From Macrostomum lignano (lineage: Eukaryota), in assembly GCA_002269645.1 (NCBI GenBank), contig NIVC01000175.1, forward strand, positions 558,001 to 622,000: a stretch of DNA of 64,000 nucleotides, given 5' to 3'. Of the stretch, positions 6,160 through 49,035 are shown one piece after another. Numbering within the stretch: position 1 is the stretch's first letter; each line of letters begins with the position of its first letter. Made by a program: the position numbers and the translations under genes. The notes beneath the pieces are model-generated. The model worked only from the letters and a program-made list of their open reading frames with translations. It was not told the origin of the DNA and made no database searches.

Positions 6160-6897
6160 AGAGAAGGGTGAGAGAGAAGATGAGAAGAGAAAAGGAAGGG
6201 GGAGAGAAGAGGAGAGAGGAGAGGAGGGAAGGGAGACGAAAAGAGAGAAGGGAGGAGGAGAGGAGAGCAAAGAAAGGAAGGAAGCAGGGGAGAGAGAAGA
6301 GAAGAGAGAGAGAAGAGGAGAGAAAGGAGAGGAGAAGAGAGAGAAGAGAGAAACGAGGGAGGGAGAGAAGGGGGATAGGAGAGAGAAGAAAGGAGGAGAG
6401 GAGGTGAATAGGAGAGGAGGGAAGAGAGAAGAAGAGAGGTGGGGAGAGAGAAGAGGAGAGGAGGGGAGAGAGGAGAGGAGAGGTGGGGAGAAAGAAGAGG
6501 AGAGGTGGGGGAGAGAGAAGAGGAGAGGAGGGGAGAGAGAAGAGGAGAGGTGGGAGAGAGAAGAGGAGAGGAGGGGAGAGAGGAGAGGAGAGGTGGGGAG
6601 AGAGAAGAGGAGAGGTGGGGAGAGAGAAGAGGAGAGGAGGGGAGAGAGAAGAGGAGAGGAGGGGAGAGAGAAGAGGACGGGAGGGGAGAGAGGAGAGGAG
6701 AGGAGGGGAGAGAGTAGAGGAGAGAATGGAGGGAAGGTAGAGAGCAGAGGAGATATGAGGAGGGGAGAGAGGAGAGGAGAGGAGGAAGAGAGAGGAGGGG
6801 AGAGAGTAGAGGAGAGAATGGAGGGAAGGTAGAGAGCAGAGGAGACATGAGGAGGGGAGAGAGGAGAGGAGAGGAGAGAAAAGAGAAGAGAGAGGAG
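6160..6897. repeat. GA-rich polypurine tract
   Basis: Almost exclusively G/A with GAGAG/AGGAG subrepeats; the ORFs here are low-complexity artefacts. Confidence 0.9.
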
Positions 6898-7996: not shown

Positions 7997-15755
<7,759 letters not shown>

Positions 15756-23021: not shown

Positions 23022-23224
23022 CACTGACTGACTGACTGACTTAAGTGAATGGGTGACTGACTGACTCACTGACTGACTGACTGACTTAAGTGAATGGGTG
23101 ACTGACTGACTGACTGACTGACTCACTGACTGACTGACTGACTGACTGACTGACTGACTGACTGACTGACTGACTGACTGACTGACTGACTGACTGACTG
23201 ACTGACTGACTGACTGACTGACTG
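23022..23224. repeat. (TGAC)n microsatellite
   Basis: Direct observation. Confidence 0.95.
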
Positions 23225-23622
23225 AATTGGCCGAAATTGACAAAGCATAGAAAAAAATTACAATGCAAACATGCAATTACTAGTATTTCACAATACGTAG
23301 CTGTGATTTTATTTGAAGTACTGAGTTTATTTGAATAGTTTTTTAAATCAATTTTCTGTTATCAGAAAGTTGAAAGAAACAGTTAAAGAACGGATCTCAC
23401 AAAGCAGAAAAGTGGATAGTGGGCAGTTAGTTTTCTATGTTATCGTATCGTTGAAAATACGAAATACATGCAGATAGCTATAAATAGAGTTGTGATTCAA
23501 TGTGCTTGCTTCAGGCTAAGTCTGAAAAGGATAAACTAAACGTTTTGCGGATTTATTTATCAGCAATTATATGTGCAGACTGCAGTATTCTATGGTGTTC
23601 AACGTTTGAATTAAAAATGAAC

Positions 23623-24094
23623 TCATAGTAAGCCGAGCTGCTGGCGGAGTCGCCTGCGAATGAAGTTGAACAGAGGAATGTAGGACGGTCGGCTCAGTCT
23701 GTTCGAGAGTCCTGCGTAGGTATTGTAAGGTTTTTAGAAATTAGCATTGCTAGAGGATTTTAAAGAAACATGAAAAAGCCGCACCTTTCTTGTCTCGCCT
23801 TCCAGCAGCAATCGATGACTTGTTAGCAGTCCCGCCGCCTTCTTTGCGATGCTGCTGCAAACCGCGTAAAATTTCGATGCACAATCGCATGACAACCAGT
23901 TTGTCCACGGTAGCTTTCGTTGAGGCCATCAACTTGTTGATGACATCGTCCGGCGACCACCAATCAGCTCGTTCAACGTCGATCTTGGCCGTTTTCATCA
24001 AAGGCTGGCTGATGGCGATGGGCAGGGCGATAGCAGAAGCGACCGCCACTGCGGCGACGCTGACCAGGGCGAATATGACAAGAAATTTTACCAT
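23623..24094 (-). CDS. Secreted prepropeptide, paralog 1 (132 aa); predicted mature peptide GLSNRLSRPSYIPLFNFIRRRLRQQLGLL
   Basis: Exons 23785-24094 and 23623-23711 with a 73-nt phase-1 intron directly after the KK codons. Hydrophobic signal peptide; RRDKK processing site. Confidence 0.8.
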
Positions 24095-26367
24095 GGTTGC
24101 TTTCCGAGATTGCTAGCTTTTCTCAATGGGAATGTTTTCTACTCATTTTCGAAAACTTTTATAGGCGAATCCAAAGTGAAGGCGGCTTAACAGATTAAAA
24201 TTGTGGGGGTGGCTTGAGGAAGATTGGCTGTCGACGATTTCCTGGGAGGGGGGAGGGATGATTAGGCCTAAAAAATTGTGCAAAATTGTTTTGAAATAAT
24301 AAACACGTGCATCGCACCGCACGCAGAACAGAACGTCTATCGATTAGGTAGAAGCGATGATCAAATCTCAGACTAATTACGACAGAGATAATCGAACACC
24401 TGCATGATTTCCCTGCCTAATATGTTTATTTCTCTACGCCAATATCGATCCCTTCATTTGGAGCCAAATAGCTCCAAAATTGGAGCCAAAATCCCGTTAT
24501 ACCGAAAATATGGCGACAAATGCGATAAATGGGGATTTCATGTGATCGGAAACCTTCCTGTGCTATTTTCAGTTTAATACACGAACGTAGGTTTTCATTG
24601 TGCTTTTTTTCAGGACCTTCTAGCAGGCCACCATTTATGAAAAATTGCACTAAAACCTGACGCTAGTTACATGAGAACACCTTAAGCTGTTGTTTTACGC
24701 ATATCAATGTCTCAAATGTCTTGAGGACTTCTTTCAGTGTAGAAGATAGATTAATCACGAGATAAGGTAACAAGCATATACTGTGCAACGGTGTACAAAA
24801 AGTACTCCGCACTTTTGAGCCTTAAGTTCACATGAAATCCCAATTTATCCCATTTCTCCCCATAGAGATCGACAAATTCAAAAATGGTCGATTTTCGATA
24901 TAATGGCTTTAAATATAGCAACGACAGAGGGAAGCGGTCGAGTTGTGAATAGAGTCGGGTCGCTCTTCAACAAAAAGGATTTCAAAAAAGGACACTAGAC
25001 ACACACGGTCCGCCTTTGAGTTGGCCCTAATAATGGGTGTGATGCGGATGGCACGGCAACACATCAGGCCAAATTTTGTGGCCGAGCAGGGTGAGGCTAC
25101 TCTGCCCTCTACTGTCTGGCAAAGCAAAGGTATCGTACTACTAATATTAGCTAGAATCGGTTGAGTGTGTCTAACCTTAGGCGTTTAAGGCTGCTCGCAA
25201 TTTGCCATAACTGTCGATTCGTGCCTAGCTACTAAGTGAAAATCCCAGGTAAGTGCAAGTACCATTCGTAGAGGATTTCGTAGGATTTTTTTGTTACTTT
25301 GTGTACAATGAACGTAAAAATACAGAAAGCTAGTGAATATCAAAATACAAAATACAACAGTTACAATCTCTTGAGTAAACGGAGTATTCAAGTTCATCAT
25401 TTTTTTCTGCACCGATATGAAGTCGAATTGCAGTTGCCTTCTAGCTTGCGTGTTGTCTTTGATGAATTTTGCCAGAATTTCCTTCTTGATCCACTGGAGT
25501 AAGGTTTTTTAATATTCGAAACCTTATATCCAAGATGTCCTGTTTAAATTGGTCACCGAGAGCACTATGTAGTTCCAACTGCATTTAAACAGGGGCGAAC
25601 TTCAATTTCTATACCCTCACATGGCCCTTTGGGCAGTCGTTAGTCTCATTCTAAAGTTATATGATTTTGTATAAAGTTCTTTCTCATATTTTTTTATTGG
25701 TTGGCAGGATCATCACAAGATAATTGATATAGATGTAAACAAAATTCACAGCATTATCGGTTATGCTGGTCGCCACACCTTGTAAGATTACATTTTGTTA
25801 TAATGCAGCTTACAGAATATTCCGATAGGCCTATTTACCATGTGTAATTACATCACGCACCACCTCTCGCAGCACAAACCAAAACTACCGCCGATCGCTC
25901 TTTCGACATCAGCACCTCCTGCTGTTAATTCTTAACTCATGTTTTAGTTTTTTTCGTAATTAGTCGACAAAAAAGCAGGCTAAAACACCGTCATAATTGC
26001 CGTAGCTAGTTTGCTTGACTTCAGCCATAAATTTAACTCGGCTTCGAAGTGTTTAAACGCGTTTTATTTATTAGTTTAGACAAGTAATAAAATTCTGGTT
26101 ACAGGGCTCTGGGATAAGAATGGGTAGAGATTCTAAGGAACTAGCATAGCATCACTACAACAAATATAGTTAATTTTGAATTGCAACACATGGTGTAAGC
26201 TTTATAAATGTATACTTCTAAAACAGAGTGGGCCGAGTTTTCAACTTTTTTTAGAGACACTTGGATTTTTTTGAGACAACAAAGTCGTTCAACTACACAT
26301 TACTATTTTTAAATCTTTTAAAATTGTTAGTCGTCCGTAACGCCCAAGCATCAAAATGGTTGCTTGA

Positions 26368-26781
26368 TTACTGCAGCTCGATGCGAAGCGCGCCGCGTAG
26401 AAAGTTGAACATTGGAATGTAAGAGTGCCGGTGCATGTAGTGTTCCATACCTGTGGGAGATAGAAAAATGAATAAACAATTATACAATATGACTAGATTC
26501 GAATGCAGTTTCAAAGCGTAGAGTCCAACGGTAAAAAAGGTGCACATACCTTTCTTGATTCGGCCGCCGGATTCAATTTTGTTGGATTCTTCGCTAGCAG
26601 ATTTTTCACCAGCAGGCAAGTTCTGCTGCAGCTGGGGCACCAGAAAGACCCTCATGAAATGGTTGGTCAGCCGACTGGCCAGCTGGTCGACGGCAGCGTT
26701 CGGCATCGGCCGACCACTGGCCCCACCAATGGCCACTGCAGCCAAGCAGACGAAAGCGACAATCATGATCCGGTGATGCAT
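26368..26781 (-). CDS. Secreted prepropeptide, paralog 2 (104 aa); predicted mature peptide GMEHYMHRHSYIPMFNFLRGALRIELQ
   Basis: Exons 26550-26781 and 26368-26450 with a 99-nt phase-1 intron after KK. Signal peptide MHHRIMIVAFVCLAAVAIGGASG; GRIKK site. Confidence 0.8.
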   Translation of the reverse strand: MHHRIMIVAFVCLAAVAIGGASGRPMPNAAVDQLASRLTNHFMRVFLVPQLQQNLPAGEKSASEESNKIESGGRIKKGMCTFFTVGLYALKLHSNLVILYNCLFIFLSPTGMEHYMHRHSYIPMFNFLRGALRIELQ

Positions 26782-26879
26782 ATTGCTGCAAAACAAATTC
26801 TAGCGTCAGAGTTGAGCTGTAAGTTCGCGCCGGCACAACTTCACGTGGTTGTTAAAACTTTTCAGGGTTCCGTATCGGC

Positions 26880-26894
26880 CTTGCTTATATAGAC
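26880..26894 (-). promoter_or_regulatory. TATA-containing motif GTCTATATAAGCAAG upstream of peptide paralog 2
   Basis: Identical 15-mer at 32392-32406 upstream of paralog 3; lies ~100 bp upstream of the ATG. Confidence 0.65.
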
Positions 26895-29149
26895 GGATTC
26901 ATCGGTCGGTGCGCTAAGATTGGCTTGCGACATCTGTTAAGTTTTCCTGGTAGAAAAATAGCTCAATTTGGATGGATTCTTAGCTGCTTCACATCGACGC
27001 AGGTGAATAATTAGCAATTTAACAAAAATTGCTCGAGCGCTGTTGCCAATTATAATTATAATTCGAAAACTACTGTCGCACGGGCTCTTCAATTCAATTT
27101 TTTCCGACCGGTGAGACTTCACTTGCTTCAGAATTTTTCTCGTCAGCACGTTTTTCGGCAGCTGGCAAATTAGGGCTTTCTTGTGAGCCATCGAAAGTTA
27201 CGGGGAAAATTTGAGGTAGCTGCCGAAGACAGCTTAGATCGAGATAGCTTTCGTTCCAGGCGGTGGACGAGACGGTGAGGTACTCGATTGACTTCTGCCG
27301 AGCGCCAGGCCGCCTTGAAGATCGGTGACGAGCGAGTTTCAAAAGCGGTGGCACTTTCTCACCGCGCTAGCCTGGTCCATCCAAGCGATCTGTTGCGCCG
27401 TTGGCGACTCCAGCTGGCAAGCCTGACGCACACTCCACTGCTGTTGTTGTTATTGTTTTGTTGGCCTAAGAAAAGGGGACGTCAACGAAGCGGTGAAATG
27501 GATCAGGACCAAACCGACTGGAATCAATAACTGACTGGACAAGTTGACTGCGTCTGTCTGTGATGGTGCCATCATCCGCCGCAACAGCGCCGTCTTCAAC
27601 AATCTATGGTGGCCTCCTCACTTGCCATTTGGATTGGATTGGATTGTCACTTGGATTGGCCTTATGGCTGCCAACAGATAAAGCAACAACCTCCCAATAA
27701 ATCTGAAGGAATTTCTTTGCTTGCTTTGTCAATTCAGGAATACGTTTGACTCAGTGTTGAGTCCGCACTCTTATTCCGATCAAAGTTTCACATCCATTGA
27801 TCGACGTCGGCATTATGCGACTGTATCACGATCCTCAAGCTGCTGTTTTGGCTGTGGATTTCTAACTTTTTTCTGTTCAAATCTCGTCAGGTGCTCTACT
27901 GGGCGAAATGCGTGCGTCATATTCCTCTTAGGCGCCTCAGCGTGCTGAGCTCATCCAAGTAGACTCACTCCTTTGTAGTCTTAGAAGATCGTCAGATGAT
28001 AAAAAATTTTGGGTTCACTACATGGAAGGATCAACCAGTATAAGCTTGGTAAAAGAAAGTCGGGAGATGGAACAGAAATTTTGTCGAGTATTTCCAACGA
28101 CGGTACCCACGGCACCGATTAGAGATGAGCAATTACTTCACCGCTTCTTTGTCCAATTCAATTGCTGAAGCGCAATTTCCTAAGCACAGCTGCAGTTGAA
28201 TGCTCTGAGGAAAAAATTATATCAAACGAACAGCATCTTGGGTTTTCTAAATCGTTGCCTTTGGGAGAAATTATCCATTTTTCATACACCTGAGCAAGAA
28301 AATAGCTTGCATGAATTTCGCTTTTAGACAGCTCTGGGTGCTGACGCAACTTAGAGACTTGGTACTGCCGAGAGTATGGAGGGGTATTGCTGAAATGCTG
28401 TGGCTCGTTGGGGAGAATTTTCTGGGATGTCGAGGCTCATGATGCTGAAATGCGATGGAACTTTTTGCTGGCTCATGAAGGAGAACATGTTGGCTAACGC
28501 TCCCGACTGCCAGCAATCCCGCGCGGCTGTCCCATGTCCTTTCCCTGCCCAAGTTCGTCGGCAGTTTGGTCCTGGCGGTCCTACTGCAGAGCGTGACTGC
28601 AGAGTGTCGACCCACGGCGACCCACAGCTGCTGAACTACACGGCTTATCTGGTTGAGGCTCGTCTGAGTTCGTATAATAACAGCTAAGCTAAAGAACTCG
28701 TTACCAAGAGGCTGAATTGAGATCGGGACTCAACAAAACGAGAACACATCAAAAATAGCAACAAAAAACTGTAAAGGCGGTGTAACAAAATCTGTGTTTT
28801 AAGGGGCTCCGTCGAGAGGGTCACAAAACTAGTTACCCAAACTTCGAAAACTACATACTTAGCCGGTACCCACGGCAGAAATTCCTCTCATTCGAAGTGG
28901 AGTGATAAACCAGTACATGGTTACGCGTTCGCAGAGTTTGGAGTAGGGATCGAGACGCAGCCCCCTGATAAAGTTCAGCCCCAAATGCACTAAACCCCTG
29001 TGCCCTCTGGCGGAGTGGAGATCTTTAACGCATTGGTTGCGGTAGATTAGACTATATCCGATTCTCTTGAATCTCGATTCTCTTCTCTCTTGGCTTCTCT
29101 CCATCACGGTACCTTTAGTCCCTTCATCGTCAACAGTACATGTCTTTTT

Positions 29150-29365
29150 TGAGGCCTTTTCTGTAGCCTTTTCTGAGGCCTTTTCTGTGGCCTTTTCTGT
29201 TGCCTTTTCTGAGGCCTTTTCTGTGGCCTTTTCTGAGGCCTTTTCTGTGGCCTTTTCTGAGGCCTTTTCTGTGGCCTTTTCTGAGGCCTTTTCTGTGGCC
29301 TTTTCTGAGGCCTTTTCTGTGGCCTTTTCTGAGGCCTTTTCTGTGGCCTTTTCTGAGGTCTTTTC
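29150..29365. repeat. 12-bp tandem repeat (TTTTCTGAGGCC / TTTTCTGTGGCC)
   Basis: Alternating variants; reads KRPQn or TEKASEKAn on the minus strand. Confidence 0.9.
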
Positions 29366-30713
29366 CGTGGGCCGGTCCTCATATCCGGTTCTAGTAGCCG
29401 GTTCTGCTACAGGTCAATTTGGCTTGCTCAAATGATAGAGGGGGCTTGGGGCACGTCCTGCTGTTTCTATCTGCTTCGCACTTCTCTTTGCTGGCTTTTT
29501 TATCCCTTGTGGCTCTGGAGCTCTTCAATTCAAGCTTTTATGCATCCGTAGCGATCTGTTGGGACTTCACGAAGATTCCAGCGGTCAGACGGCATCATCC
29601 GCGAAGAGAACTTGCTTCCTTACAGCCAGCAGCGGAGGTGCTGCAGGAGCCACTCGGCGACTGCCTGTTGGATGACGCCCCATGTCCGGTTGGCCCCCTG
29701 TGACGCTGCTCTGCCAGTTTCTTAAGACTGTCTGACTGCGTCGTTGGACTGATGGAAATTTACCTTACCGTAGAATGGTTGTTAAAACTCAAACGGCAGC
29801 AGAATTGGCCCAACTGATATTCATGTCAAAAAAGTCGTGTCTTTAACTTCAAACTTCGTACGTTTCTTGTTTAAATTATGAGACAGATCACTCCTAATAC
29901 TAAAACTGACGTTTGTCTGTCTGTCCTAATACTAAAACTGACGCGATGTTTGTCTGTGTGTGTGTATTGCAAGTGAACTCCTACAATACTTGCAAGTCAG
30001 CGTCGAAACTTATATGGGAAAACTGCTATTTTAAGAGATGAGAGGAGAGACAGGAGAGACTAGAAATAAGATAGCAAAGAAAAGAGAGCAGAGATGAGAG
30101 ACTAGAGATGGAAAGCAGATTAGAGAGAAGAGATAAGAGACTACACTGTAGAGATGAGAGGGCAAAGAGGAGAGCAAAAAAGGCTTTACAGAGGATTTGG
30201 AGATGATTTGGAAGATGGGATTCAAGTCATGGAGTTTCAGCTGATGGATTTCAGGCAATGGAATTCCGGTGATGGGATTTCTTCCCCTATCTCCTCCGGA
30301 GGAGGAGTTCCACTCGTTTTTTATGAAACTGAAATAATCTTAGTCAACAAGATGATTTGCATAAAATTCCATCCTTCAAAAAAATTCAAATCTGTATCTA
30401 TAAAATTTAATATATATATTTTCAATTATTAAAGCAAATTTTACAAGCGTAGTAAGCATAATCGCAAAATCGATTCGTCTTTTTATTCGCGTGAAACAGA
30501 AAATTCGTATTCGGGACAGTCAAATATTTCTTCAGTAGACGAGAAAGAATTTTTAAATCAAATACAGTTTTGAACTTATTCAGAGCTTTCAATTCAAATT
30601 TGAATCAGCAATGATAATGTAATATTAAATAGGATTTCGATGAAAATTTAAAAATCAAGCCGCGTTCACTCCAGTCAGATGCACAATGTATGCAACTGAC
30701 TTGGATGGGGTGA

Positions 30714-31870
30714 ACAATCAAGGTCACAAAAATAAAAGAGAGATCGTTTTACAATCAAGGTCACAAAAATAAAAGAGAGATCGTTTTACAATCAAGGTCA
30801 CAAAAATAAAGGAGATAGATCGTTTTACAATCAAGGTCACAAAAATAAAGGAGATAGATCGTTTTACAATCAAGGTCACAAAAATAAAGAAGATAGATCG
30901 TTTTACAATCAAGGTCACAAAAATAAAGAAGATAGATCGTTTTACAATCAAGGTCACAAAAATAAAGAAGATAGATCGTTTTACAATCAAGGTCACAAAA
31001 ATAAAGAAGATAGATCGTTTTACAATCAAGGTCACAAAAATAAAGAAGATAGATCGTTTTACAATCAAGGTCACAAAAATAAAGAAGATAGATCGTTTTA
31101 CAATCAAGGTCACAAAAATAAAGAAGATAGATCGTTTTACAATCAAGGTCACAAAAATAAAGAAGATAGATCGTTTTACAATCAAGGTCACAAAAATAAA
31201 GGAGATAGATCGTTTTACAATCAAGGTCACAAAAATAAAGGAGATAGATCGTTTTACAATCAAGGTCACAAAAATAAAGGAGATAGATCGTTTTACAATC
31301 AAGGTCACAAAAATAAAAGAGATAGATCGTTTTACAATCAAGGTCACAAAAATAAAGAAGATAGATCGTTTTACAATCAAGGTCACAAAAATAAAGAAGA
31401 TAGATCGTTTTACAATCAAGGTCACAAAAATAAAGGAGATAGATCGTTTTACAATCAAGGTAACAAAAATAAAGAAGATAGATCGTTTTACAATCAAGGT
31501 CACAAAAATAAAGAAGATAGATCGTTTTACAATCAAGGTCACAAAAATAAAGAAGATAGATCGTTTTACAATCAAGGTCACAAAAATAAAGAAGATAGAT
31601 CGTTTTACAATCAAGGTCACAAAAATAAAGAAGATAGATCGTTTTACAATCAAGGTCACAAAAATAAAGGAGATAGATCGTTTTACAATCAAGGTCACAA
31701 AAATAAAGGAGATAGATCGTTTTACAATCAAGGTCACAAAAATAAAGGAGATAGATCGTTTTACAATCAAGGTCACAAAAATAAAAGAGATAGATCGTTT
31801 TACAATCAAGGTCACAAAAATAAAGAAGATAGATCGTTTTACAATCAAGGTCACAAAAATAAAGGAGATA
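30714..31870. repeat. 39-bp tandem array (~29 near-identical copies)
   Basis: Unit ATAGATCGTTTTACAATCAAGGTCACAAAAATAAAGAAG. The 376-aa ORF is an artefact of the unit length being a multiple of 3. Confidence 0.95.
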
Positions 31871-31911
31871 CTCGTACGTAGATCGTTTTTATCAGTCTAT
31901 CTTGCCAAACT

Positions 31912-32331
31912 TCATTTGATTTTGTAGCGAAGCGTTCCGCGGAGAAAGTTGAACAACGGAATGTAGGAATTTCGGCTCAGGTTCTGATCAGTATCTGCGG
32001 TAGGAGGTCAGATTTGCAACAGTTGAAACTTTTGTTGTTGAAGCATCAAAATGCTCGCACAATGAATAAGATACTCACTTTTCTTAGCCCGACGAGAGTT
32101 GCGTTCTGGTTGGGGTATTTTCTCCAGGTTGTTCAGTTGTTCAACCACGTAAGCTTTAATGATCTCGCTTGCCAGCTGAATAGCCATTTGGTTTAACACT
32201 GTTTCCAACTGTACCAACTTGTTGTTAGTAGCTGTAGGCCTCTTCAGTCCCTCTTCGACTGGTAGAGCAATGGCCGAAGACACCACAGCCGAGAAGACCA
32301 CTAGAGCCAGAAGGATGGATTGATGGTGCAT
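31912..32331 (-). CDS. Secreted prepropeptide, paralog 3 (111 aa); predicted mature peptide NTDQNLSRNSYIPLFNFLRGTLRYKIK
   Basis: Exons 32079-32331 and 31912-31994 with an 84-nt phase-1 intron after KK. Signal peptide MHHQSILLALVVFSAVVSSAIA; RRAKK site. Confidence 0.8.
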
Positions 32332-32391
32332 GGTCGATCTTTAGCTTTGGAGCTTTGTTACAAACCTGCAATTGAAACCTGCAAAAATCGG

Positions 32392-32406
32392 CTTGCTTAT
32401 ATAGAC
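32392..32406 (-). promoter_or_regulatory. TATA-containing motif GTCTATATAAGCAAG upstream of peptide paralog 3
   Basis: Identical to 26880-26894; lies ~60 bp upstream of the ATG. Confidence 0.65.
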
Positions 32407-34037: not shown

Positions 34038-36960
34038 ATGTCTGACTCTGTTAAAGTCCTACGTGAGAGGCTGCAAGGTCTTGGCTTGCCAACGTATGGC
34101 AATAAGGGTGAACTGATAGAACGCCTATTTCAGCATTGTCACACACTGGCCTCTGAACTGCAAAGTGAAGAAGCGGAGGCATCAGACCATCCAGTACGTG
34201 AGCGGGGCGAGATCGACGGTAGAAAAAGGGAACGAGGCGGCCGAGCTACCGAGCGACGCGGGGACAGCGGCGGCAACCGGAGGCCCAGGGTCTGGCGCGG
34301 CTGGAGGCCTGGAAGCGGAGCAACGGATCCGCCTGTTGAAGCTGCCAAAAGAGGAGGTCTGCTCCAGGCGGAGGTCAGCCAGCTCCAGCAACAGCCGGCC
34401 ACCTCAGAGCTCCATGGTGAGTTCTTCGATGCCTTTATGTCGGAGGAGGCGCATACTAGGAAGCAGGAGATAGGGCTTAGAAAAGTCAGTCCCAACCGCA
34501 TCACTGAGTTCATCAGTTAAGCGTAAGCAGCAGGACGCTGGTGTCACGCAGTCCGTGGACAGGTCGGGGAAGGTGGTCTTCAAGGTGAAGGAGGCTGCGG
34601 TGGAGACGTTGACGATGGGAGACTGGGTAGCTGGCAATGCACGCATCATGCTGAGAATGCTAGATGATGGCAGACTGGTGAAGTGATGGTGGTTGCCCTG
34701 ATATGTCGGAGCTACGTGACTATCTGCACTACACTGTTCGCATCGGTGAGCTGTTCTACCTCCGTTTCGAGAAGGCGCGGGTGCTGAGATTCGACAATGA
34801 GTGCCGGCTTGGTGACTCGCCTGGGAGGCGCGTGGTTCAGACATCGGCCTGGTGTCCACGTACTTGATGGCGCCACAAAAGAGCGAGGTCGCTGCAGAGA
34901 GACCGGTTAGGAGGGGCCAGGGCATCTGTTTCGATTTCAACAAGGAGGCTGGGTGCTGCAGGAGGAACTGCCGGTTTTCTCATCGGTGCCGGCGATGTGG
35001 TCAAGGCCATTCGAAAGCGGCCGTGCACGGGGGCCCGGCTGCGGAGGCGGCAGGGCTTCGACACAGACTGAATGGCGGTGAAGTTTTTAATTCCCGGATT
35101 TTATCTACCCACATGAACCTGACGGAGTGTAAGGAGGAGCTGAGTGTTGTAGATGTGCCGCGGGATCATAAGAGTTTCATTTTGGATGGAATGACCAGTG
35201 GGTTTCGTATCACTAACGTTCCGGCCAGCAGCAGTGATAGGATCGAAGTCAGCAACTACAACTCTATCAATGTTTTTATGGAGGCGGTGGAGAAGCAGAT
35301 CGGCAAAGAGGTTGAGCTGGGCCGTTACCGCCTGTGCCCGAAGGGGCAGCGGCCTGAGATTGTGAGTGCCATCGGTGTCTTGCCGAAAGACAACGAACGG
35401 GTGCGCCTGATTCACGACTGTAGCCGGCCGCCCAGTGGCTGTGTCAACTCGATGTGGTCGGTCAGGAGAAGCTGAACTTTTCTTGCGCGGAAAACTTTGC
35501 CAGGAAGTTGACTAGAGGGTGCTGGATGACCAAAGTCGACCTGAGAGAAGCTTATCGCGTGCGGTTGGTGTGCACCCTGACGACTTCAGCCGGACTGGAA
35601 TCAAGTTTCGCGCTTTCGGAACTCCAACACTGCGTCCTACATGTACGACACAAGGCTACCCTTTGGAGCGGCGGCTTCGGTGACGTGCTTTCACCGGCTC
35701 AGCGAGCGATGAAGCTGATGATGGTGCGGAGAGGTTTCATCAGGACTGAGGCGTACTTGGATGACTTTGCCTTTTGTGGTTCGCGTGAGGACTGTCAGAA
35801 ATTTTCCGATTAGATGGCTGACCTCGTGACTCGCTTGGGATTTACTTTCAACTGGGGCTAGTGTCAGCGGCCCTCTCAGCGTGTCCTTCTTGGGTGTCGA
35901 GTTTGACACTCACCGGGGTGAAGAAACTGTCGGATGAGAAGGTGGAGAAGCTTGTCTGTCTGCTGGAGCTGGAAGCGGAAAAAAACAGAATTTGTCGGCG
36001 GTCACTGCAGCATGTGATTGGTAAGCTCGGTTGGGTGGCGCAGGTTATCTGTTCTGGGCGCACGTTCATGCGGGAGTTGATCGATTGTTGCAAATGCTCT
36101 TCAGCCAGGGCAGCGGATGAAAAATATCGATGAGCGGCTGCGGAGCTTTTTTCAGTGGTGGACAGTCTCGTTGAAGTTGTGTTGGTGGTCGAAGTTGTGG
36201 CCATGAGTTGAATGATGTTGCCATCGAGTCGGATGCTTGCGGAAGAGGCAGTGCGGCGGTGCTGCGAATGCCCAATGGATTCTGGGACTGGTGCTATGTG
36301 GACTGGTTGATGGATGCGGACTTGGCGTTTGTAGAGCTGCCCATCAACTACAAAGAAACGGTGGCACCGCTGCTGGGCGTCATCCGCTGGAGGGAGCAGC
36401 TCAAGGGCTCCAGGAGCAGCATCTATTGCGACAACCAAGCCGCCTGCCACATTATCAGCAAGGGCGTTTCCAATTGTGCGCCACTGCAGCGGCTGCTGCA
36501 GACGGTGGCACTCACGTGCCTGCGTTATGGGATGAGTGTTCGTGCTTTCCCCGTGTCGAGCGAGTTCCAGATTTTTGTGGATGCGGCTTCTCGGCTGCAT
36601 GAGCCTAGCCAGTTGTTAAACTTTGTCATGGTTCTGTGTGCCAGTGGGCGCTGGCGACTCTGCACGTGCATGCTTTCTGCTAGTGGGGTCTGCTCCGCAA
36701 GTCTAGCCTGCTTCCCCGCAGAGCTAAGGGCCCAGAACCCATGCAGCGCTCCAACCTGCAGAGGTACCCCAGGGGTCTTGTCCTGCGCTGCGATCGGACA
36801 GTCCATCGGACAGTTTAAGGAGCGCGTGCATCTGTTCCTTCTTCCAAGACTGGCTCGGCGGTTGGCACAGTGCCCTGACGCCGCCCTCGAGCGACACATC
36901 TGAGAATCGGCTGGTGTCGGCTGATCAGCTTCTCTTGTCGCTCTGCTATGCCCGGGGCAA
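34038..36960 (+). mobile_element. Decayed tyrosine-recombinase retrotransposon (Ngaro/DIRS type): gag (SAP, CCCH finger), RT, RNase H, YR fragment
   Basis: SAP-like LRERLQGLGLPTYGNKGELIERL; gag TMGDWVAGNARIM..DYLHYT..IGEL; ICFDFN..C..C.F.H.C..CG.GH finger; RT RLIHDCSRP, KVDLREAYR, AYLDDF; RNase H SDACG, INYKE, YCDNQAA, VDAASR; YR WGLLRKSSL..GLVLR..QFKERV..CP at ~36680-36900. Multiple stops and frameshifts. Confidence 0.85.
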
Positions 36961-39307: not shown

Positions 39308-42300
39308 TTAATCCCGACGGAAAGTCCTACCGGACATTGTCTTCTTCTCCTTCTGCTCATTGGCATAGGACGGCCTGGCTCTATTAAGGATGGACAAGAA
39401 CTCGTTAGTCTTGGCCCGCATCCGCATATGAATGTAGACCTTGCTGCACTTGATATGATAGTGCAGATAGTTGCGGAACATGTGCACCAAGTCGATGGTC
39501 TTGTCGCGAGCCTCCGGCGATGTGTGCCGAGGAAACAGCACGAAGGTGACGTAGGCGACATTGTCAGCAACCAGAGCGTCAGTGCCGGCAATGCTCGACG
39601 GCGGATTCTTATGAGAATAGAGCACCTGCGGCGCCTGGTTGAAATCTCTGCGCGATTCAACAAACTCTTGAAGGAACACTTTGCCAACAATGATATCGTC
39701 GGGGTCGCGGAAAACCACGCTAAAGATGACGGTGACGCGGTCTGGGAGCGCCTCGACGTACCTGAATAGATGGGGAAGGTAAAAATATAACACCTTACTT
39801 ACACCTGCAACTAAAATACCCCCAGCCCCACCGGACACTCAACGGCCAGAAAATTGTTCGTATAGGGGGAGTGCCTGTGCCAAGTCGCACCTGAACCGGT
39901 TTAATTAGTTCTCCCTGAGATAGATATGTATAGATACACGTTTGCGCTTCTACTGTGGGACTTACCCCATGCCATCCCATTCTTCAGGCTCTTGAGTATG
40001 ATGACACCCCATCCTTCATGTTCTTTAATGTGAGTGAAACCCCATCCTTCAGGTTCTTCAGTGTGAGTGACACCTCATCCTTCAGGTTCTTCAGTGTGAG
40101 TGACACCCCATCCTTCAGGTTCTTCAGTGTGAGTGACACCCCATCCTTCAGGTTCTTTAGTGTGAGTGACACCTCATCCTTCAGGTTCTTCAGTGTGAGT
40201 GACACCCCATCCTTCAGGTTCTTCAGTGTGAGTGACACCCCATCCTTCAGGTTCTTCAGTGTGAGTGACACCCCATCCTTCAGGTTCTTCAGTGTGAGTG
40301 ACACCCCATCCTTCAGGTTCTTCAGTGTGAGTGACACCCCATCCTTCAGGTTCTTCAGTGTGAGTGACACCCCATCCTTCAGGTTCTTCAGTGTGAGTGA
40401 CACCCCATCCTTCAGGTTCTTCAGTGTGAGTGAAACCCCATCCTTCGGGTTCTTCAGTGTGAGTGAAACCCATCCTTCAGGTTCTTCAGTGTGAGTGAAA
40501 CCCTATCCTTCAGGCTCTTCAGTGTGAGTGAAACCCCATCCTTCAGGTTCTTCAGTGAGAGTGACACTTCGTCCTTCAGTGAGAGTGACACTTTATCCTT
40601 TAGTGAGAGTGACATTTTATCCTTCAGACTGAGTGACATCCCATCCTTCAGTGTGAGTGCACCCCATCCTTCAGGTTCTTCAGTGTGAGTGAAACCCTAT
40701 ACTTCAGTGAGAGTGACACTTCGTCCTTCAGTGAGAGTGACACTCCATCCTTTAGTGAGAGTGACATCTTATCCTTCAGAGTGAGTGACACTTCATCCTT
40801 CAGTGAGAGTGACACTTCATACTTCAGTGAGAGTGACACCCCATCCTTCAGTGTGTAACACCCTATCCTTCAGTGCGAGTGACACCCCATCCTTCAGTGT
40901 GAGTGACACCCTATCCTTCAGTGCGAGTGACACCCCATCCTTCAGTGTGAGTGACACCTCATCCTTCAGTGTGAGTGACACCCTATCCTTCAGTGAGAGT
41001 GACACCCTATCCTTCAGTGTGAGTGACACCCCATCCTTCAGTGTTAGTGACACCCTATCCTTCAGTGTGAGTGACACCCTATCCTTCAGTGAGAGTGACA
41101 CCCTATCCTTCAGTGTGAGTGACACCCCATCCTTCAGTGTGAGTGACACCCTATCCTTCAGTGTGAGTGACACTTCATCCTTCAGTGATGGTGACACTTC
41201 ATCCTTCAGTGAGAGTGACACCCCATCCTTCAGTGAGAGTGACACCCTATCCTTCAGTGTGAGTGACACCCCATCCTTCAGTGTGAGTGACACCCTATCC
41301 TTCAGTGTGAGTGACACTTCATCCTTCAGTGATGGTGACACTTCATCCTTCAGTGATGGTGACACTTCATCCTTCAGTGAGAGTGACACCCCATCCTTCA
41401 GTGAGAGTGACACCCTATCCTTCAGTGTGAGTGACACCCCATCCTTCAGTGTGAGTGACACCCTATCCTTCAGTGTGAGTGACACCCTATCCTTCAGTGA
41501 GAGTGACACCCCATCCTTCAGTGAGAGGCACGGGACTCCAACGCAGAATAACTCACAGGGTCTCATCATCACGATAGTGAATCACAGCCCTCTGCTCGGC
41601 GTCTCCACCAGCGGCTTGCAGATTAAAATATTTTTCAAAAACGCAGGCAAAACAGTTGCGCTTAAGCATAGACGCCTGCATAACGAGTTCTTTGTAGTTG
41701 TCTGGCAGATCGGTTAGGCGATAGCAAAGCGTCACATTGTAGCCTGGTTCGGTAGTGTCCAGCAGATAGTTGCCATATCTGGCTTTCAACAGATCGTGGG
41801 CACCATGGTCCTCCAGTTCCTTGAAGAATTTCAAGCTAATGCTCACCTGCATGTAGATTTTGTTTGATTTTACATACGATGAAAACGGGACTTTGACCAG
41901 AATCGTTGCAGGTAACACAGGTAAAATAGGAAATAAGTGACTCTAGACGACTCTAAAACGACAAGATGTCTCGGCAAAAGTCACTAAAAACTCGCCTAAG
42001 CATACATGCGCAACAGTCGGCCGAGTCGGCCGACCGATTTGGCGGCCAATCAAGGAAGTCGCAAAAATGCGACTTTTTTGGTAGTAAAAAGTACTAAGTA
42101 GTAGTACTAAGTAGCTGACGAGGCATTTTGACTTAATAAGACAGTCATAGTTACTCTTGCCGTTCACCCAAAGGGTTTTTTACATGTAAGTCGCATTTTG
42201 GCCAAAAACTACGTCGCATTTTTGTTAAAACTAAGTCGCATGGCCAACCGAATTTTGGAGGTTGCGCATGTATGCGCCTAAGAGTCAATTTGAGGCTTTT

Positions 42301-45300
42301 TGAATTAGAATCGCATTTTGCAATTTTAATGTCAACTCCGATTCTTGTCATACTAACGCCTTCAATTGGAATCACAAGATAAAGCATTTCAACTCACCCA
42401 GATGACAAAACGATCCTGACCAGGATTGCTAATATGATAGATGGCGCCATCAAAGTCGGCCACTTTGATGTCCACACTGTCAGGTTTGGAGCTGTTTGGA
42501 AGTAAAATTGAGTGACAAAGAATTTTCTTATTTCAGGTTTTTGCTTTACCAGGATGCCAGGTAACATTAGTCCATAAGTTCAACAGTACCCTTTTACACT
42601 GCTGAGCCTGTCTGACCCAAAAAAGTTTGCAGAATTCATGTACTTACAGATTACTTTAAATTTGGCAATTGATAGAAGTCTTGACATCCTAATAATTATA
42701 AAACTATTGGTAGTAAACTAATTATTAAATTTTGAAGAATTGAACCCTAAATCAAATAAAAAACTTAAATTAAATTTGATCTAGGTTAGATCCTAAATTT
42801 AGGATTTAAATTTAGGATACTAAATTAATGTTGATATATCCTAACATGCTATAGCAAAAAATCTAGTTGGCAAGTCTAAAATAAACTAGTTATATATTTT
42901 ATAGACTTATGATACCTAGGACTTTCAGAAGAGCTCAATATATATAATCTAGCCTATCTGGCTAAGTTAAGACTATATTCTAGCCATAGATCAAATCAGA
43001 TTTGGGCCTAATTAGATTTTGAAATATAATAGAAAAAATACAAATGGCCTAAACACTTGTAATGTGTTAGTATAAGCTGCCACACCACTGGTACTATTTT
43101 GCTTTGATTGCCCAAACTGACACCCCATATTGCAAAAGGTATCCTGTTGGAAAAGTTATGCACTTGTGTAGGCATAAAAGGTGAGAGAGGTGCACAAAAG
43201 AGGCACTTTAGTGGCCTATTTTGTGTGTGTTTTGGAAATGCAACTGAGTGCACCTTTTATGCCTAAATGTTACCAATATTTTTAAAAGAGGCATGAAAGA
43301 TGTACAATCAGTAAAGTGGTCAGGCATTAGGGGAATTATCATTTCGAAATTTTGGTTATATTTTAACAATTTAGACATTGATGATCATGCTACACAAGAA
43401 AGAAAATCTATAGGAAGTGAAAGGAAGTGCAGTTCAAAGACTCAGTGGGGAGGTGAGAATTGCCTTTTCTACAAGAAAAGATTGTGCGGGGCACACTGTT
43501 CCAGGCCTTGTGCTGCACCCACTTCAACCTCCACAAGCCCACTGGCTGAACTCATCGGCGTGGATTTTAATTGGCTAAAGACTTAAAGCCTTAATGAAAT
43601 GGATATAGGCTACTTGCATCTAGATCTTCAGCTTAAACAGTGGTGAAGTATAATACAACTTCTACTATATTTCTATGTACAAGTGTATAATACATATAAT
43701 ACACCAGCATTTTCTATTTCGTATTTTTAAAGTAAATTAAATCTTAAGTATTCTGGTTTAAACATATCAAAGATACTTTTTATAAAACATGTAAGCTTAT
43801 ACATGCAGAGGCAAGGTGTTAACCTTTTTGCATGATTAGTGAAAAAGTAAAAATTTGTTAAGCTCAAAAATTTCAATTTTGATTCTAAGGAACCAAAAAT
43901 TTTGATTTCGATTTCGATTTGAAAAATAATTTCAATCCATCACTACATTAGTGAGGAAAAGTTTCAAATCTTTCCAAAGAATAGTGAGAAATAGTAGCAA
44001 AGCACTTTTGCAAGTTGGAATGCCCCTTGCATTGCTTCTATGCCTAAAATGCCCACTGTGCACCTTTTGTGCCTCCAATGCACACTATATACATTTTTAT
44101 GTACCTCTACTATAGTGCAACTTTTGTTTACCTTTCACTCTATTAATACCCCCAATTCCTACTTTGTTCACCTTTTGTGTCTCCAATGCATACTGTGCAC
44201 CTTTAATTCACCCAACTCCCCTATGACACCTGTGCCCCTACCACCTACTTTGTTACGTTCCAAAATCAAAATTGAAATTGAAATTTTATGAAATCAAAAT
44301 TCAGAAAAACAAAGTATAGCATGACAAACACTCACTTTTTACTATTTATTTACTGCTCATGCAAAACAAAATACACGTATATATAGTGGAAATTAGTTTA
44401 TTTTCAGCCACTGAATAAGTAGAATCTCTCATTGCCACTTTGAATACAAAAACTTTTTTAACATGAAAACTATATATAACCATTGCTGCCCAGTTGTATG
44501 TATACATAATGCAATCTAGTATATACATGTAGTACCCATTGAATTTTGAGTTTTTAAAGTAGGCATGAAAGGTGAAGAGTTTTATACCTTCTGCCTCACT
44601 TTTGCCTCTTTTATGCCTATTTTGTGCCACTTGTGCACCGCGTGTTCACCTGAGTAGCTCTGCAGGGTCAGAAGGTGAATATAAGGCACGAAATAGGTGG
44701 TAGGGGCATAGGTGTCATAGGGGAGTTTGGTGTATTAAAGGTTGTGTGCATTGGAGGCACAAAAGGTGAACAAAGTAGGAATTGGGGGCATTGGTGGAGT
44801 GAAAGGTGAAAAAAAGGTGTGTTGTGGTGGAGGTGCATAAAAAGTGTACAGTGTGCACTGGAGGCACAAAAAGTGAATAAAGGTGCACAGTGTGCATTGG
44901 AGGCACAAAAGGTGAACAAATGGTGCACAGTGGGCACTTTAGGTGTAGAGGCAATGCAAGAGGCGTTCCAACTTGCGAAAGTTCTTTGCTACTTTTTCTT
45001 ATTATTCTTTAAACAGATTCAAAGCTTTTCATCACTTTTCGTGAGTATTTGAAAGTTATTAAAACTTATCAGTACAGGAAATGTTTACTTTTGTGGTTTG
45101 TCAGGATTAGGAAAGGGATAGCAGCAATTAGTATAGGTAAAAATAAAGCTTTTCTATGTTCATTCTGTGCGTGCAATATACGAGTATGTAACCCATACTC
45201 AGGAAGGTGGCCTGCATGCGGGAATTTTCCCGCGTGCACAAGCCATGCTAAAATTTTGGTGTGCAAAGTTGGCGTGCAAATAGGGGTCTCAAGCCACGCC

Positions 45301-48300
45301 TAAATTTTTAGCGTACAGGCTCATTCCATATAAGATGGACATATTTGGAAAATAGAAAAAAGTCAATATTTTTGCTTGCCATTGCCTAATTAGCCTATTT
45401 TTTTACCAAATGTTTATATTGTGCAATATATACAATCTAAGAATAAAGGAATGGTAAAATGTTGGATTAGTATGTTATCAATTGGCAAAAAGTCATTTTT
45501 GTAAAAATTTGGACATTTTTCAAAGCAAAAGACATCATTAAGATTTTGTACCTTTTAAAAACAAATAGAAAGCTTTTGAAGGTTGAAACAAACTATAGAT
45601 AAAAGTATAGTACTTGCATCATCAGATAAAAGCATTAGTGACCAAATAATCTCTACCTATAAAAATCAAAACTCTGTGTGTGTGTGTGTGTGGACAATTT
45701 TGATCGCTATGGACTCCCAAACCGCTCAACCAAATTACACCAAACTTTACACCCACCCTAAACTTACTACGGAGAATGTCTTAGGCTACCTTTTATTTCC
45801 TAAATTTGAGTCTTCCTACCTAAAAGTGCAAAAAACTGCTCAAAATGCGCATTTTTTTCACTAAATCCTCCATAGCGCCGCTCCACTTCTACCGATTCTC
45901 TTCAAATTTGACACAGATAATCTTAAAATATTTTGGCACAATCATGTAAAATTTCGAGTCTCAAAGTTAATTCTGAGCGGTGCTGTGCACTTTTAAAATT
46001 AGGCTGTTTTTTTCAGCGTAGCAACCACCCCAACCTCCACCCGCCTGCCTCTCTTTCCCGATCTGGGCAAAGGGTGCAAATAGGTTTTTAAATGACTAAC
46101 TTTGGGCTGCCATAAGTTTGCTTCACGTGAAGCGATTAACTTCAAATTTGACACAATTCTTCATTAACTTATTCTCTGTCTAAATGTAAAGTCTCAACTC
46201 TGTATCTCAATCAGGACGGAAACTGTAAGCATGTGAAGTTTGTCTGCTTTTTCTGTTGTTTGTGCCTCTCACTCATTCCCCAGAGCCAGACGAAGGGTCA
46301 GGCGATAGGGCTGAATGTACATAGCAAATGTACAGTGTTTTGGAATTCCACCCCGAGAGTGGAGAGGCTACATTTAGCCATAACAGTTTAGTGAGAAATT
46401 CTAACCACTGCCCTCCCCTCTGTATTGGCAAACTCTGCAGCAGTTTAACAGTGGATGGCAATTGGCAATTGGCAAATCGAGGGAATTCACTAATACCACT
46501 ATCCAGCATGGTTTGTAAAAGCGAAAGATTTATGAAAAGGCGATGCCATGCAATGCAATACAACCCTACTAAATTAGGCACACCATGGAAATTTTAGGTT
46601 TCTTTCAAAGGTACTGTACTGTGTAAATATTAAATGGCCTTCTAAGAAATGCGTATTTCCTTGGTTGTTAGACTGATGCAGACTGCAGTGGAGCTGAAGA
46701 TACACAAATTCCTTTCAGGGCTGCAGCCTACAAATTGGCAAGAAAGATGACGTGATCAAAGCATGAGAACAACCATGAGAGTACTACGTCCCACAAACTG
46801 GCTTTCCAAGCAGGGATGGGCAGACTTTTACCTCAAAGGCCAGATAAAGAATCCAGCTCATAGCTGAGGGGCAGATGAAAGTGGAAAGAAGAAGGAATAG
46901 ACGATTCAAAGAGAGGAGAGGCGACAGAGGGGATAAAAGAAAAGATAAAAGATAAAAGGAGAGATGAGGGGGTGAGGACGATGAGAGAGAGGGGGAGAAG
47001 AGGGGAGAGAGGAAAAGCAAGAGGAGAGAGAGGAAAAGCAAGAGGAGAGAGTAGAGATGAGAGAGCAGAGAGCTGCAGATGAGAGGAGAGAGGAGACAGC
47101 AGAGAGAAGAGCAGAGAGGAAACAGGTGAAAGAAGAGATGAGAGAGTAAAGGGAAGAGAGAAGAGATAAAGATACATCTCTACATCTCTAAGGTTGTAGA
47201 GATGAGAGAGGTGGAAGGAGAGATGAGAAATGAGAGATGAGAGATAACGGAGAGAGGAAAGTGGAGTGAGAGAAGAGAGGGAGACAGAGTATAGAAAAGG
47301 GAAGAGAAGAGAAAAGAAGAAAGGAGAAAGGAAAGTGAGGAGTCAAAAGAGGGGAAAGAAAAGAGTACAGAGGAGAGAGGTGAGAGAACATATAAGACAG
47401 AGATGCCAGATTAAAGAGGGGGATGAGAGAGCAGAGACGAGAGTGAACAGATAAAAGATGGGAGAGTAAAAGGGTTTCAAAATTGAATAACTTTCAGCTA
47501 CCATAAGTTTGCTCCACGTAAAGCGATTGACTTCAAACTTGACACAATTCTTCATTGACCCATTCTCTATCTAAATGTAAAGTTTTAACTCTGTAACTCA
47601 ACCGAAAAAGAAACTGTAAGCATGTGAAGTTTGTCTGCTTTTTCTGTTGTTTGCCGCTCATCCAACTCATTCCCCCAGACGAAGGATCAGGCGATAGGGC
47701 TCAATGTACATAGCGAATGTACAGTGTTTTGGAATAACTTTTTAATAGCTTTCTCTGTACCCCCGCGAGTGGAGAGGCGTAGAGAGGAGAGAGTTTAGCG
47801 AGAGATTCAAACTACTGTCCTCTGTATAGACAAGTCGCAGCAGTTAAACAGGGATGGCAAATCAAGGCGATATGGGATGGTTTATAAAAATAGCGAAAAA
47901 TGAATGAATAACTGATTACAATGCAATCCTACTAAATTAGTTACACCATGAAAATTTTAACATTAAGATTCGCATAAGGTAACTTTAAAATTTAAATGGC
48001 CTCCTAAGAAATGCGTATTTCCTTGGTTGTTAGACTGCTGCAGACTGTGGTGGTGGAGCTGGAGAATGGAGATACACAAATTCCTCTCAGGGCTGCTAAT
48101 TGGCCAGAAAAATGACGTGATTAAAGCATGAGAAATGATAACAACCATGATAGTACTTTCGAAGCAGGGATTGGCAGATTTTTATCTCAAAGGCCAGATA
48201 AAGAATCCAGCTCATGGCTGCGGGCCAGATGAGAGTGAAAAGGAAAAGTGGTGAGGAGAGAGCAGAGAAGAAGGGAGGAAGAAGCGAGAGGAGGGGAGAA

Positions 48301-48977
48301 AGGAAGGAGAGGAAAGAGTAAAGGTGAGAAGAGGGGAGAGATGAGACAGAGGATCGATGAGAGAGTAGAGTAGAGAAGATTGAGAAGAGAGTAGAGATGA
48401 GAAAGCAGAAAAAAGATGACAGAGGGTCAAGAGGAGAGGAGAGATTAGAGAGGAGAGAGTAGAAAGGATAGAGAAGAGAGGAGATAAGAGGGGGATAGAG
48501 GAGTGAGAAGAGAAGAGATAGAGATAAGAGAGTGGTGAAAGAAGAGGGAAGAAAGGAGAGATGAGAGAGTAAAGGAAAGAGGAGGAGAGAGGAAAGAGAT
48601 GAGATTGTAGAGATGAGACAGATGAAAGAAGAGACGAGAGAAAAAGGTGAGAGGAGAGTGCAGAGAGATAAGAGAAGATAATAGAGGAGAGAGAGTATAG
48701 AAGAGGGAAGAGAAAAGAAGAAAGGAGTAAGGAAAGAGAGGAGTCAGAAGAGGTGAAAGAGAAGAGTACAGAGGAGATAAGTGAGAGAACGTATAAGAGA
48801 GTAAAGATGACAGATGAGAGAGCAGATGAACAGACGAGAGATGGGAGAGTAGAGAGAACAGAGGAGAGATAAGAGAGAAAAGATTACAGAGACTAGAGGA
48901 GGGAGGAGAGACAGGGAGAGAGAAGAGGAAATAGGAGAATGAAGAGGGGAGAGAGTAGAGAGAAGAGAGATGGGAGA

Positions 48978-49035
<58 letters not shown>

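Follow-up and report, generated by a model that had tools for sequence, protein, structure and literature searches.

Three short genes in a 64-kb stretch of Macrostomum lignano DNA were found to form an apparently undescribed, prohormone-like gene family. The stretch (the window, whose positions are used throughout) is part of contig NIVC01000175.1 of assembly GCA_002269645.1, where the record coordinate equals the window position + 558000. It was identified as M. lignano by an ARPC2 exon in the window that is 100% identical to M. lignano proteins. Judging by their sequence, the three genes, g1, g2 and g3, are protein coding and belong to an old tandem family; the genome has one or more additional paralogs elsewhere. 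Each predicted precursor would consist of a signal peptide, a fast-evolving prodomain with helical and disordered parts, an R-x-K-K site and an exon-2 peptide with a core under selection. In the reading that we favor, the products would be secreted precursors that are processed to a C-terminal peptide acting as an extracellular signal, and we consider the chances of this reading to be about even. Its likeliest form would be a neuropeptide or a peptide hormone.

Structure of the three genes

To check the gene structures, the minus strand was read and translated over 23623-32331 (to 32.4 kb). All three genes are co-oriented on this strand and have two exons each, with an identical design, as listed here.

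g1 exon 1, 23785-24094 (310 nt), minus strand: ATG at 24094; signal-like N-terminus MVKFLVIFALVSVAAVAVASA; 80-aa prodomain ending RRDKK; first base of a split Gly codon
g1 intron, 23712-23784 (73 nt), minus strand: GTGCGG..CGCAG, phase 1
g1 exon 2, 23623-23711, minus strand: GLSNRLSRPSYIPLFNFIRRRLRQQLGLL and stop codon; 14-codon core at 23644-23685
g2 exon 1, 26550-26781 (232 nt), minus strand: ATG at 26781; signal-like N-terminus MHHRIMIVAFVCLAAVAIGGASG; prodomain ending GRIKK
g2 intron, 26451-26549 (99 nt), minus strand: GTATGT..CACAG, phase 1, open in frame
g2 exon 2, 26368-26450, minus strand: GMEHYMHRHSYIPMFNFLRGALRIELQ and stop codon; core at 26383-26424
g3 exon 1, 32079-32331 (253 nt), minus strand: ATG at 32331; signal-like N-terminus MHHQSILLALVVFSAVVSSA; prodomain ending RRAKK
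g3 intron, 31995-32078 (84 nt), minus strand: GTGAGT..CGCAG, phase 1
g3 exon 2, 31912-31994, minus strand: NTDQNLSRNSYIPLFNFLRGTLRYKIK and stop codon; core at 31927-31968

The predicted spliced products are 132 aa (g1), 104 aa (g2) and 111 aa (g3) long. Since the lengths of all three first exons equal 1 modulo 3, the introns are in phase 1. Each predicted intron has GT..AG ends and a pyrimidine-rich acceptor, and each follows directly after two Lys codons. The mechanical list of open reading frames (ORFs) missed exon 2 of g1 and g3 because exon 2 holds no start codon, and it ran through the g2 intron because that intron is open in frame.

An initial annotation of this DNA, made from the letters alone, had proposed three co-oriented, two-exon paralogs with a signal peptide each and with phase-1 introns right after the KK codons. 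Translation of the minus strand bore this out, and the N-termini are hydrophobic and signal-like by inspection. The spliced products end in exactly the three C-terminal peptides that it had quoted, and the net charges that it had given for them (+6, +1 and +4) agree with ours. It was also correct that exon 2 of paralogs 1 and 3 is missing from the ORF list. The prohormone-like architecture that it had recognized is likewise what the sequences predict, with a signal-like N-terminus, a divergent prodomain, an invariant R-x-K-K and a conserved C-terminal peptide.

The motif YIPxFNF occurs exactly 3 times in the six-frame translation of the 64-kb window, each time on the minus strand. Hidden Markov models (HMMs) built from exon 1 and from exon 2 each matched exactly g1, g2 and g3 (E 1e-17 to 1e-39), and the next best match had E > 0.6. 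Thus, the motif scan and the HMMs found no further copies, pseudogenes or decayed fragments of the family in the window.

Conservation and selection

The only DNA that could be aligned between the paralogs was the core of exon 2 (23-42 nt, ~86% identity) and a TATA element of g2 and g3. Over 16 codons around the core, synonymous divergence (dS) was 0.8-1.4, which is near saturation, and nonsynonymous divergence (dN) was 0.09-0.23; in the core, dN/dS was ~0.1-0.17. Because dS is near saturation while dN is low, the similarity of the core has been kept at the amino-acid level, and the exon-2 core is under purifying selection at that level. Gene conversion was considered as a source of the exon-2 similarity and was ruled out, since the synonymous sites of the core are near saturation.

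Protein identity was then compared by region over four members, which are g1, g2, g3 and a fourth paralog described below. It was 47% in the signal peptide, 16-23% in the prodomain blocks, 10% in the linker, 75% in R-x-K-K (with R, K and K invariant), 25% in the first nine exon-2 residues, 79% in the core S10-R23 and 11% in the tail. Conservation is therefore focal and falls on R-x-K-K, R8 and SYIP(L/M)FNF(L/I)Rxx(L/I)R. Within g1-g3 the core reads SYIP(L/M)FNF(L/I)RxxLR, and the residues that the initial annotation had called invariant (R8, S10-Y-I-P, F-N-F, R19 and L22-R23) are so. The excess conservation that it had expected of exon 2 holds for R8 and the S10-R23 core but fails for the first nine residues and the tail, at the identities just given. 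As the first nine exon-2 residues are as variable as the linker, the functional unit probably starts near R8/S10 and not at KK.

The two parts of the R-x-K-K site differ in their codons. The codons for the P4 Arg are CGA, CGA and CGG, so this residue is conserved at the amino-acid level. The codons for KK are AAG AAA in all three genes and abut the splice donor.

The fourth paralog and searches for relatives

A profile of the three proteins was searched against 5.8e9 clusters (word-indexed) and returned a sole relative, UniProt A0A1I8HG52 from M. lignano. This protein is named only 'Secreted protein', has 104 aa and is 63% identical to g2. Its gene model has the same join of exon 1 and exon 2, with ..SRSKK before the join and GAVATYVSRRSYIPMFNFLRGAIRKQLQKSINQS after it. 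An exhaustive HMMER search of 1.84e9 representatives at E <= 0.001 also returned A0A1I8HG52 alone and no other relative. A0A1I8HG52 is without an entry in the public-assembly index.

Other sources gave no match to a described family. Pfam returned nothing at E <= 10 with whole proteins or with peptides, and a profile search of all PDB chains returned nothing at E <= 10. No paper in the literature search matched the full motif or the accession A0A1I8HG52, and the 5-mer matches were unrelated chance occurrences. Nothing matching was found in the supplements of a xenacoelomorph neuropeptidome paper, nor in those of the M. lignano seminal-fluid screen, whose text files contain no sequences. In the JGI metagenomes, a strict degenerate DNA pattern had 0 matches. 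A loose pattern had 74, and the 31 that were translated with the motif in frame were all due to chance, being interrupted by internal stops or lying in long bacterial membrane-protein ORFs with YIPGFNFFR. The collection searched also contained at least one transcriptome from a fairly close relative (Logan SRR30276815, with ARPC2 at 89% identity); no family member was found there, though a relative that shares the core only would not reach significance.

These data suggest that the family matches no described one and that it looks lineage-restricted, apparently to Macrostomum, where 'Macrostomum-only' means that no relative was detectable at E <= 0.001-0.01; in databases as large as these, a divergent ortholog in which nothing but the 14-residue core is retained would fall below the reporting threshold. 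The initial annotation had called the family unrecognized and lineage-specific. The Pfam, PDB and HMMER searches are in line with the first claim, and the second agrees with another M. lignano protein being the only relative among the 1.84e9 representatives.

The locus L001 of NIVC01000175.1 equals window 29308-62804 at 100% identity, and ARPC2 is the sole gene called in this 33.5-kb stretch, which includes the unannotated g3. The products of g1, g2 and g3, spliced or read through, were absent from a collection of 15 billion proteins when searched by exact match. The duplicated scaffold NIVC01000251.1 bears a second, intact g3 that differs by one substitution (Q4R). This scaffold (L002) duplicates window 29380-62842 at 96-99% identity and carries ARPC2 together with the g3 copy, which fits either the duplicated (neopolyploid) genome of M. 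lignano or haplotypes left uncollapsed. There is a lesson for annotation here, as g3 is uncalled in L001, the three products are missing from the protein collection and ORF tracks do not show the second exons of g1 and g3.

Properties of the precursors and peptides

Signal peptides were judged by inspection. Each N-terminus has a short polar or basic n-region followed by 14-17 hydrophobic residues (mean Kyte-Doolittle hydropathy 1.7-2.3), and small residues occupy positions -3 and -1 of the predicted signal peptides (ASA, SSA and ASG). The predicted cleavage sites are R-x-K-K, which stands directly before exon 2 in 4/4 members, and the invariant R8, which is part of an RR in the fourth paralog.

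The exon-2 peptides have 27-34 aa, and their last residues, which the stop codon follows immediately, are ..GLL, ..ELQ, ..KIK and ..NQS. By reading, the peptides of the four precursors have no terminal Gly and no Gly-basic amidation signal. Their net charges are +6 (g1), +1 (g2), +4 (g3) and +6 (fourth paralog), and the best 14-mer of each has a hydrophobic moment of 0.47-0.54.

AlphaFold2, run with a five-row alignment, gave a low-confidence, non-globular model (predicted local distance difference test, pLDDT, 55.7; predicted template modeling score, pTM, 0.22). Helices were predicted for the signal peptide (2-21), the prodomain (29-53) and over the core (88-103), and the disordered stretch 54-87 holds R-x-K-K and R8. 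As modeled, there is no compact fold.

Basic residues are also found close to the core, where RR directly precedes SYIP in the fourth paralog and RRR directly follows FNFI in g1. Since the core is preceded by RR in one member and trailed by RRR in another, an alternative product is possible, namely the nonapeptide SYIPxFNF(L/I).

Proposed mechanism

A processed secreted peptide is favored because the focal conservation is bracketed by invariant basic residues within a disordered linker. According to this reading, the precursor would enter the secretory pathway, and a subtilisin-like prohormone convertase would cut it at R-x-K-K and possibly also at the invariant R8. The basic residues would then be trimmed by a carboxypeptidase. 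This would release a non-amidated, Cys-free peptide of ~18-29 residues that starts with a Pro-capped amphipathic helix and acts on a cognate receptor. Candidate released peptides are GLSNRLSR.., (P)SYIPLFNFI.., NTDQNLSR..KI and (N)SYIPLFNFLRGTLRYKI. Among the paralogs, the core that contacts the receptor would be retained, and the variation would lie in the flanks and in charge. In M. lignano, the pc2 homolog RNA815_2403.2 has an RNA interference (RNAi) phenotype (PMC4490696).

The fuller proposal is a Macrostomum-specific peptide signaling system with at least four paralogous genes and an undetectable ancestry, in which the ligand is non-amidated, Cys-free, Pro-capped and helical, the cleavage site is an unusual R-x-K-K and cognate receptors are presumed. 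We put it forward tentatively, as possible rather than probable.

Several points weigh against a processed signaling peptide. The amidation signal is absent, and there is no similarity to any known neuropeptide. Secretion, splicing and cleavage are all predictions, and convertases favor K-K less than they do K-R or R-R. The conservation of KK may be partly at the nucleotide level, as AAG AAA overlaps the splice-donor consensus. Besides the core, g2 and the fourth paralog have a weaker block of conservation in the prodomain, RPMPNAA(V/I)DQ(L/V)ASRLTN.., which could hint that the whole protein works uncleaved. Also, orphan secreted gland proteins far outnumber prohormones in flatworms, so the prior favors a non-neuronal product. 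Finally, a conserved C-terminal amphipathic helix is a hallmark also of the trematode helminth defense molecules (HDMs), which are not neuropeptides (PMC3093369).

Other possible explanations

One possible explanation is that the products are small gland proteins (prostate or seminal-fluid, adhesive, mucus or epidermal) that act uncleaved, as two helices on a flexible linker, with an RxKK that is incidental or constrained by splicing. We regard this as somewhat unlikely. M. lignano does have many prostate-limited transcripts (Mlig-pro1-76), and a signal peptide is present in 38 of the 65 that were translated (PMC5977470). TATA promoters and tandem duplication are typical of genes that are abundantly expressed in secretory cells, and g2 and the fourth paralog have two conserved blocks in common, one being the core and the other the helix after the signal peptide. 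This explanation could also account for the AAG AAA codons, identical in three genes, next to the donor site. However, the prodomain is only 10-23% identical across the four members, yet the P4 Arg and KK are invariant, and the Arg codons differ. The AlphaFold2 model shows no packing of the two helices at its pTM of 0.22, and 14 residues of focal conservation bracketed by basic residues are a pattern typical of excised peptides.

Alternatively, the C-terminal peptide could be released and serve in host defense as an amphipathic peptide that binds membranes or lipopolysaccharide, analogous to LL-37 or the HDMs (FhHDM-1 and Sm16). The architecture closely parallels that of the trematode HDMs (PMC3093369), three of the four peptides have net charges of +6, +4 and +6, and the hydrophobic moment is ~0.5. 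The net charge of the g2 peptide, however, is just +1, and the polar and aromatic residues that are invariant (S, Y, P and N) would be needless for a purely physicochemical function at membranes and argue for specific recognition. The exhaustive profile search retrieved no trematode HDM or Sm16, and the HDM signature EKI-x9-R-x2-D-x-L is absent. In addition, HDMs are reported to be trematode-specific and to act on the vertebrate host, whereas M. lignano is free-living. We therefore consider a defense peptide quite unlikely. It is highly improbable that the sequences are non-functional, as chance ORFs, pseudogenes or repeat-derived sequence, even though the NCBI record calls no gene at g3, the exact products are missing from the 15-billion-protein collection and micro- and minisatellites abound in the region. 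Three copies are intact and agree in exon-intron design, start, stop and TATA box, a fourth intact paralog is annotated in UniProt, and the HMM matches (E 1e-17 to 1e-39) stand against a background of E > 0.6. The selection pattern, with a core dN/dS of ~0.1-0.17 despite saturated synonymous sites, effectively excludes that these are not real genes.

The choice between these explanations matters since M. lignano is a flatworm model with working transgenesis and RNAi, and its peptide signaling repertoire appears uncatalogued in the searchable literature. If the products are processed ligands, the cluster would be a compact entry point to that repertoire, with three short genes, defined promoters and a synthesizable peptide of 18-29 residues. 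Flatworm biology would gain a previously undescribed family of neuropeptides or hormones, in a model species open to transgenesis, and the cluster would show new ligand families arising by tandem duplication while retaining a 14-residue core. If the products are ordinary gland secretions, the family would be a routine orphan family.

Promoter and 3' elements

A TATA box stands 69-110 nt before the ATG in every gene, and the sequence upstream of each ATG also includes a CCAAT box. The elements of each gene are listed here.

g1 TATA box TATAAAAG, 24156-24163, minus strand: 69 nt upstream of the ATG; CCAAT box at -133
g2 TATA box TATATAAG, 26884-26891, minus strand: at -110, within the 21-nt element GTCTATATAAGCAAG..; CCAAT box at -142
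g3 TATA box TATATAAG, 32396-32403, minus strand: at -72; CCAAT boxes at -94 and -118
g1 poly(A) signal AATAAA, 23552-23557, minus strand: 66 nt past the stop codon

The 21-nt element around the TATA box is common to g2 and g3. No canonical AATAAA or ATTAAA was found within 400 nt after the stop codon of g3. A 39-bp minisatellite (window 30714-31870, 29.8 copies, 98% identity) starts ~40 nt past this stop codon, and the 3' end of g3 may lie in or before the array.

Acceptor-like tracts were seen just upstream of the start codons of two genes. In g2 the tract is TTTGTTTTGCAG followed by CAATATG (window 26782-26795, minus strand), and in g3 it is TTTTTGCAG followed by G (at about 32370-32385, minus strand). 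These could be acceptors for spliced-leader trans-splicing, which is known in M. lignano, or the ends of introns in the 5' untranslated region.

Neighborhood of the cluster in the window

Repeats lie close to the peptide genes. An (ACTG)n microsatellite of 50 copies occupies window 23023-23225, ~400 nt downstream of g1, and a 12-bp repeat, CTTTTCTGTGGC, is present in 19 copies between g2 and g3 (29144-29370). Beyond g3, retroelement-like ORFs were found on both strands at 34038-36903, with a weak RT_RNaseH match at 36208-36903 and a local GC content of 0.49-0.56. This is probably a decayed long terminal repeat (LTR) element or retrotransposon insertion between g3 and ARPC2. Long ORFs of low complexity or of tandem repeats at 6123-6848, 9999-10697, 11458-15371 and 48744-49849 include Ser/Leu/Pro-rich tracts, (CAGA)n-type tracts and one peptide repeat. 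The ORFs of these four tracts show strong GC and AT skew and, as far as seen, are repeats and not genes.

Three other genes or gene-like ORFs were recognized, all on the minus strand. ARPC2 (Arp2/3 p34) spans 39308-52804, or 13.5 kb, in the NCBI annotation, with exons at 39308-39838 and 41553-41918; the intron separating these two exons is taken up by large minisatellite arrays (39955-41572). A phospholipase B-like gene lies at 3676-5485, where overlapping ORFs of 419 aa and 233 aa cover positions 1-256 and 260-487 of Pfam Phospholip_B, which implies that the reading frame shifts or that a short intron is present near 4226-4377. A single-exon ORF of 583 aa (57117-58868) has a full-length match to Pfam ASC (DEG/ENaC, amiloride-sensitive sodium channel; E 3.7e-47). 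It had no homolog in the database of 5.8e9 clusters at E <= 1e-20, a cut-off that was too strict, and it was read as a divergent channel for this reason. Some DEG/ENaC channels are peptide-gated, and this ORF, at a distance of 25 kb, probably lies near the peptide genes by coincidence.

Comparison with known systems

The layout of a signal peptide, a propeptide, a basic site and one C-terminal helical peptide is shared with the PDF, CRF/DH44/ELH and calcitonin/DH31 precursors. A CRF/DH44-like reading, in which S-x4-F-x2-L-R-x2-L is set against SLDLTFHLLRxxL, was rejected as chance-level by shuffle-controlled local alignment and by the Pfam and PDB searches. The alignment z-scores against shuffles were -1.7 to +1.9 for CRF, urocortin, sauvagine, urotensin I, DH44 and ELH. 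Also, the CRF/DH44/ELH peptides have ~36-46 residues and are amidated, whereas the family peptides have 27-34 aa and no amidation signal. By reading, neither RFG nor RYG occurs in the four precursors. The RFamide, NPF-NPY and amidated families were ruled out since there is no Gly as amidation donor.

The trematode HDMs (FhHDM-1 and Sm16/SPO-1) and the cathelicidin CAP18/LL-37 are secreted helical proteins of ~90-130 aa (PMC3093369), as is predicted for g1-g3. In the HDMs, as in g1-g3, a C-terminal amphipathic segment (~30-35 residues) is best conserved, and in the HDMs it is freed by proteolysis (PMC3093369). The resemblance to the HDM layout, with a signal peptide, a helical protein of ~90 aa and a most conserved C-terminus, is one of architecture only, as the exhaustive profile search detected no sequence relationship. 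By reading, the HDM signature is missing from our peptides, and although g3 has an EKI, the R, D and L do not follow it at fitting distances. The enzyme that cuts HDMs is cathepsin L, which acts after a single Arg, in contrast to the predicted convertase-type R-x-K-K site of g1-g3. HDMs are also confined to parasitic trematodes and target host immunity.

The putative seminal fluid proteins of the Mlig-pro set come from the same species as g1-g3, and many of them are predicted to be secreted. Prostate-limited proteins of M. lignano are poorly annotated functionally.

A parallel in organization was seen with the Planarin family of Schmidtea mediterranea (Smed-spp-6, -7, -8, -9 and -17; Collins et al. 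2010, PMC2953531). There is no sequence similarity between the two families, and no planarian protein came up in the exhaustive HMMER search. For the planarian genes, cDNA provided verification, and mass spectrometry did so for many of the peptides (PMC2953531), while g1-g3 are predicted from sequence. In g1-g3, unlike the Planarins, one non-amidated C-terminal peptide would follow R-x-K-K, where a phase-1 intron is placed. Planarian prohormones were recognized by a signal sequence, basic sites that flank the peptide, a length of <200 aa and no likeness to a gene with another function (PMC2953531). By prediction, g1-g3 have the same features, with a signal-like N-terminus, flanking basic sites, 104-132 aa and no match to another family. 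The Planarin genes, too, encode small precursors of <200 aa with a signal peptide, and both families appear to lack homologs outside a narrow flatworm lineage. In the Planarins as in g1-g3, basic sites flank the conserved peptide, and the paralogs adjoin one another in the genome.

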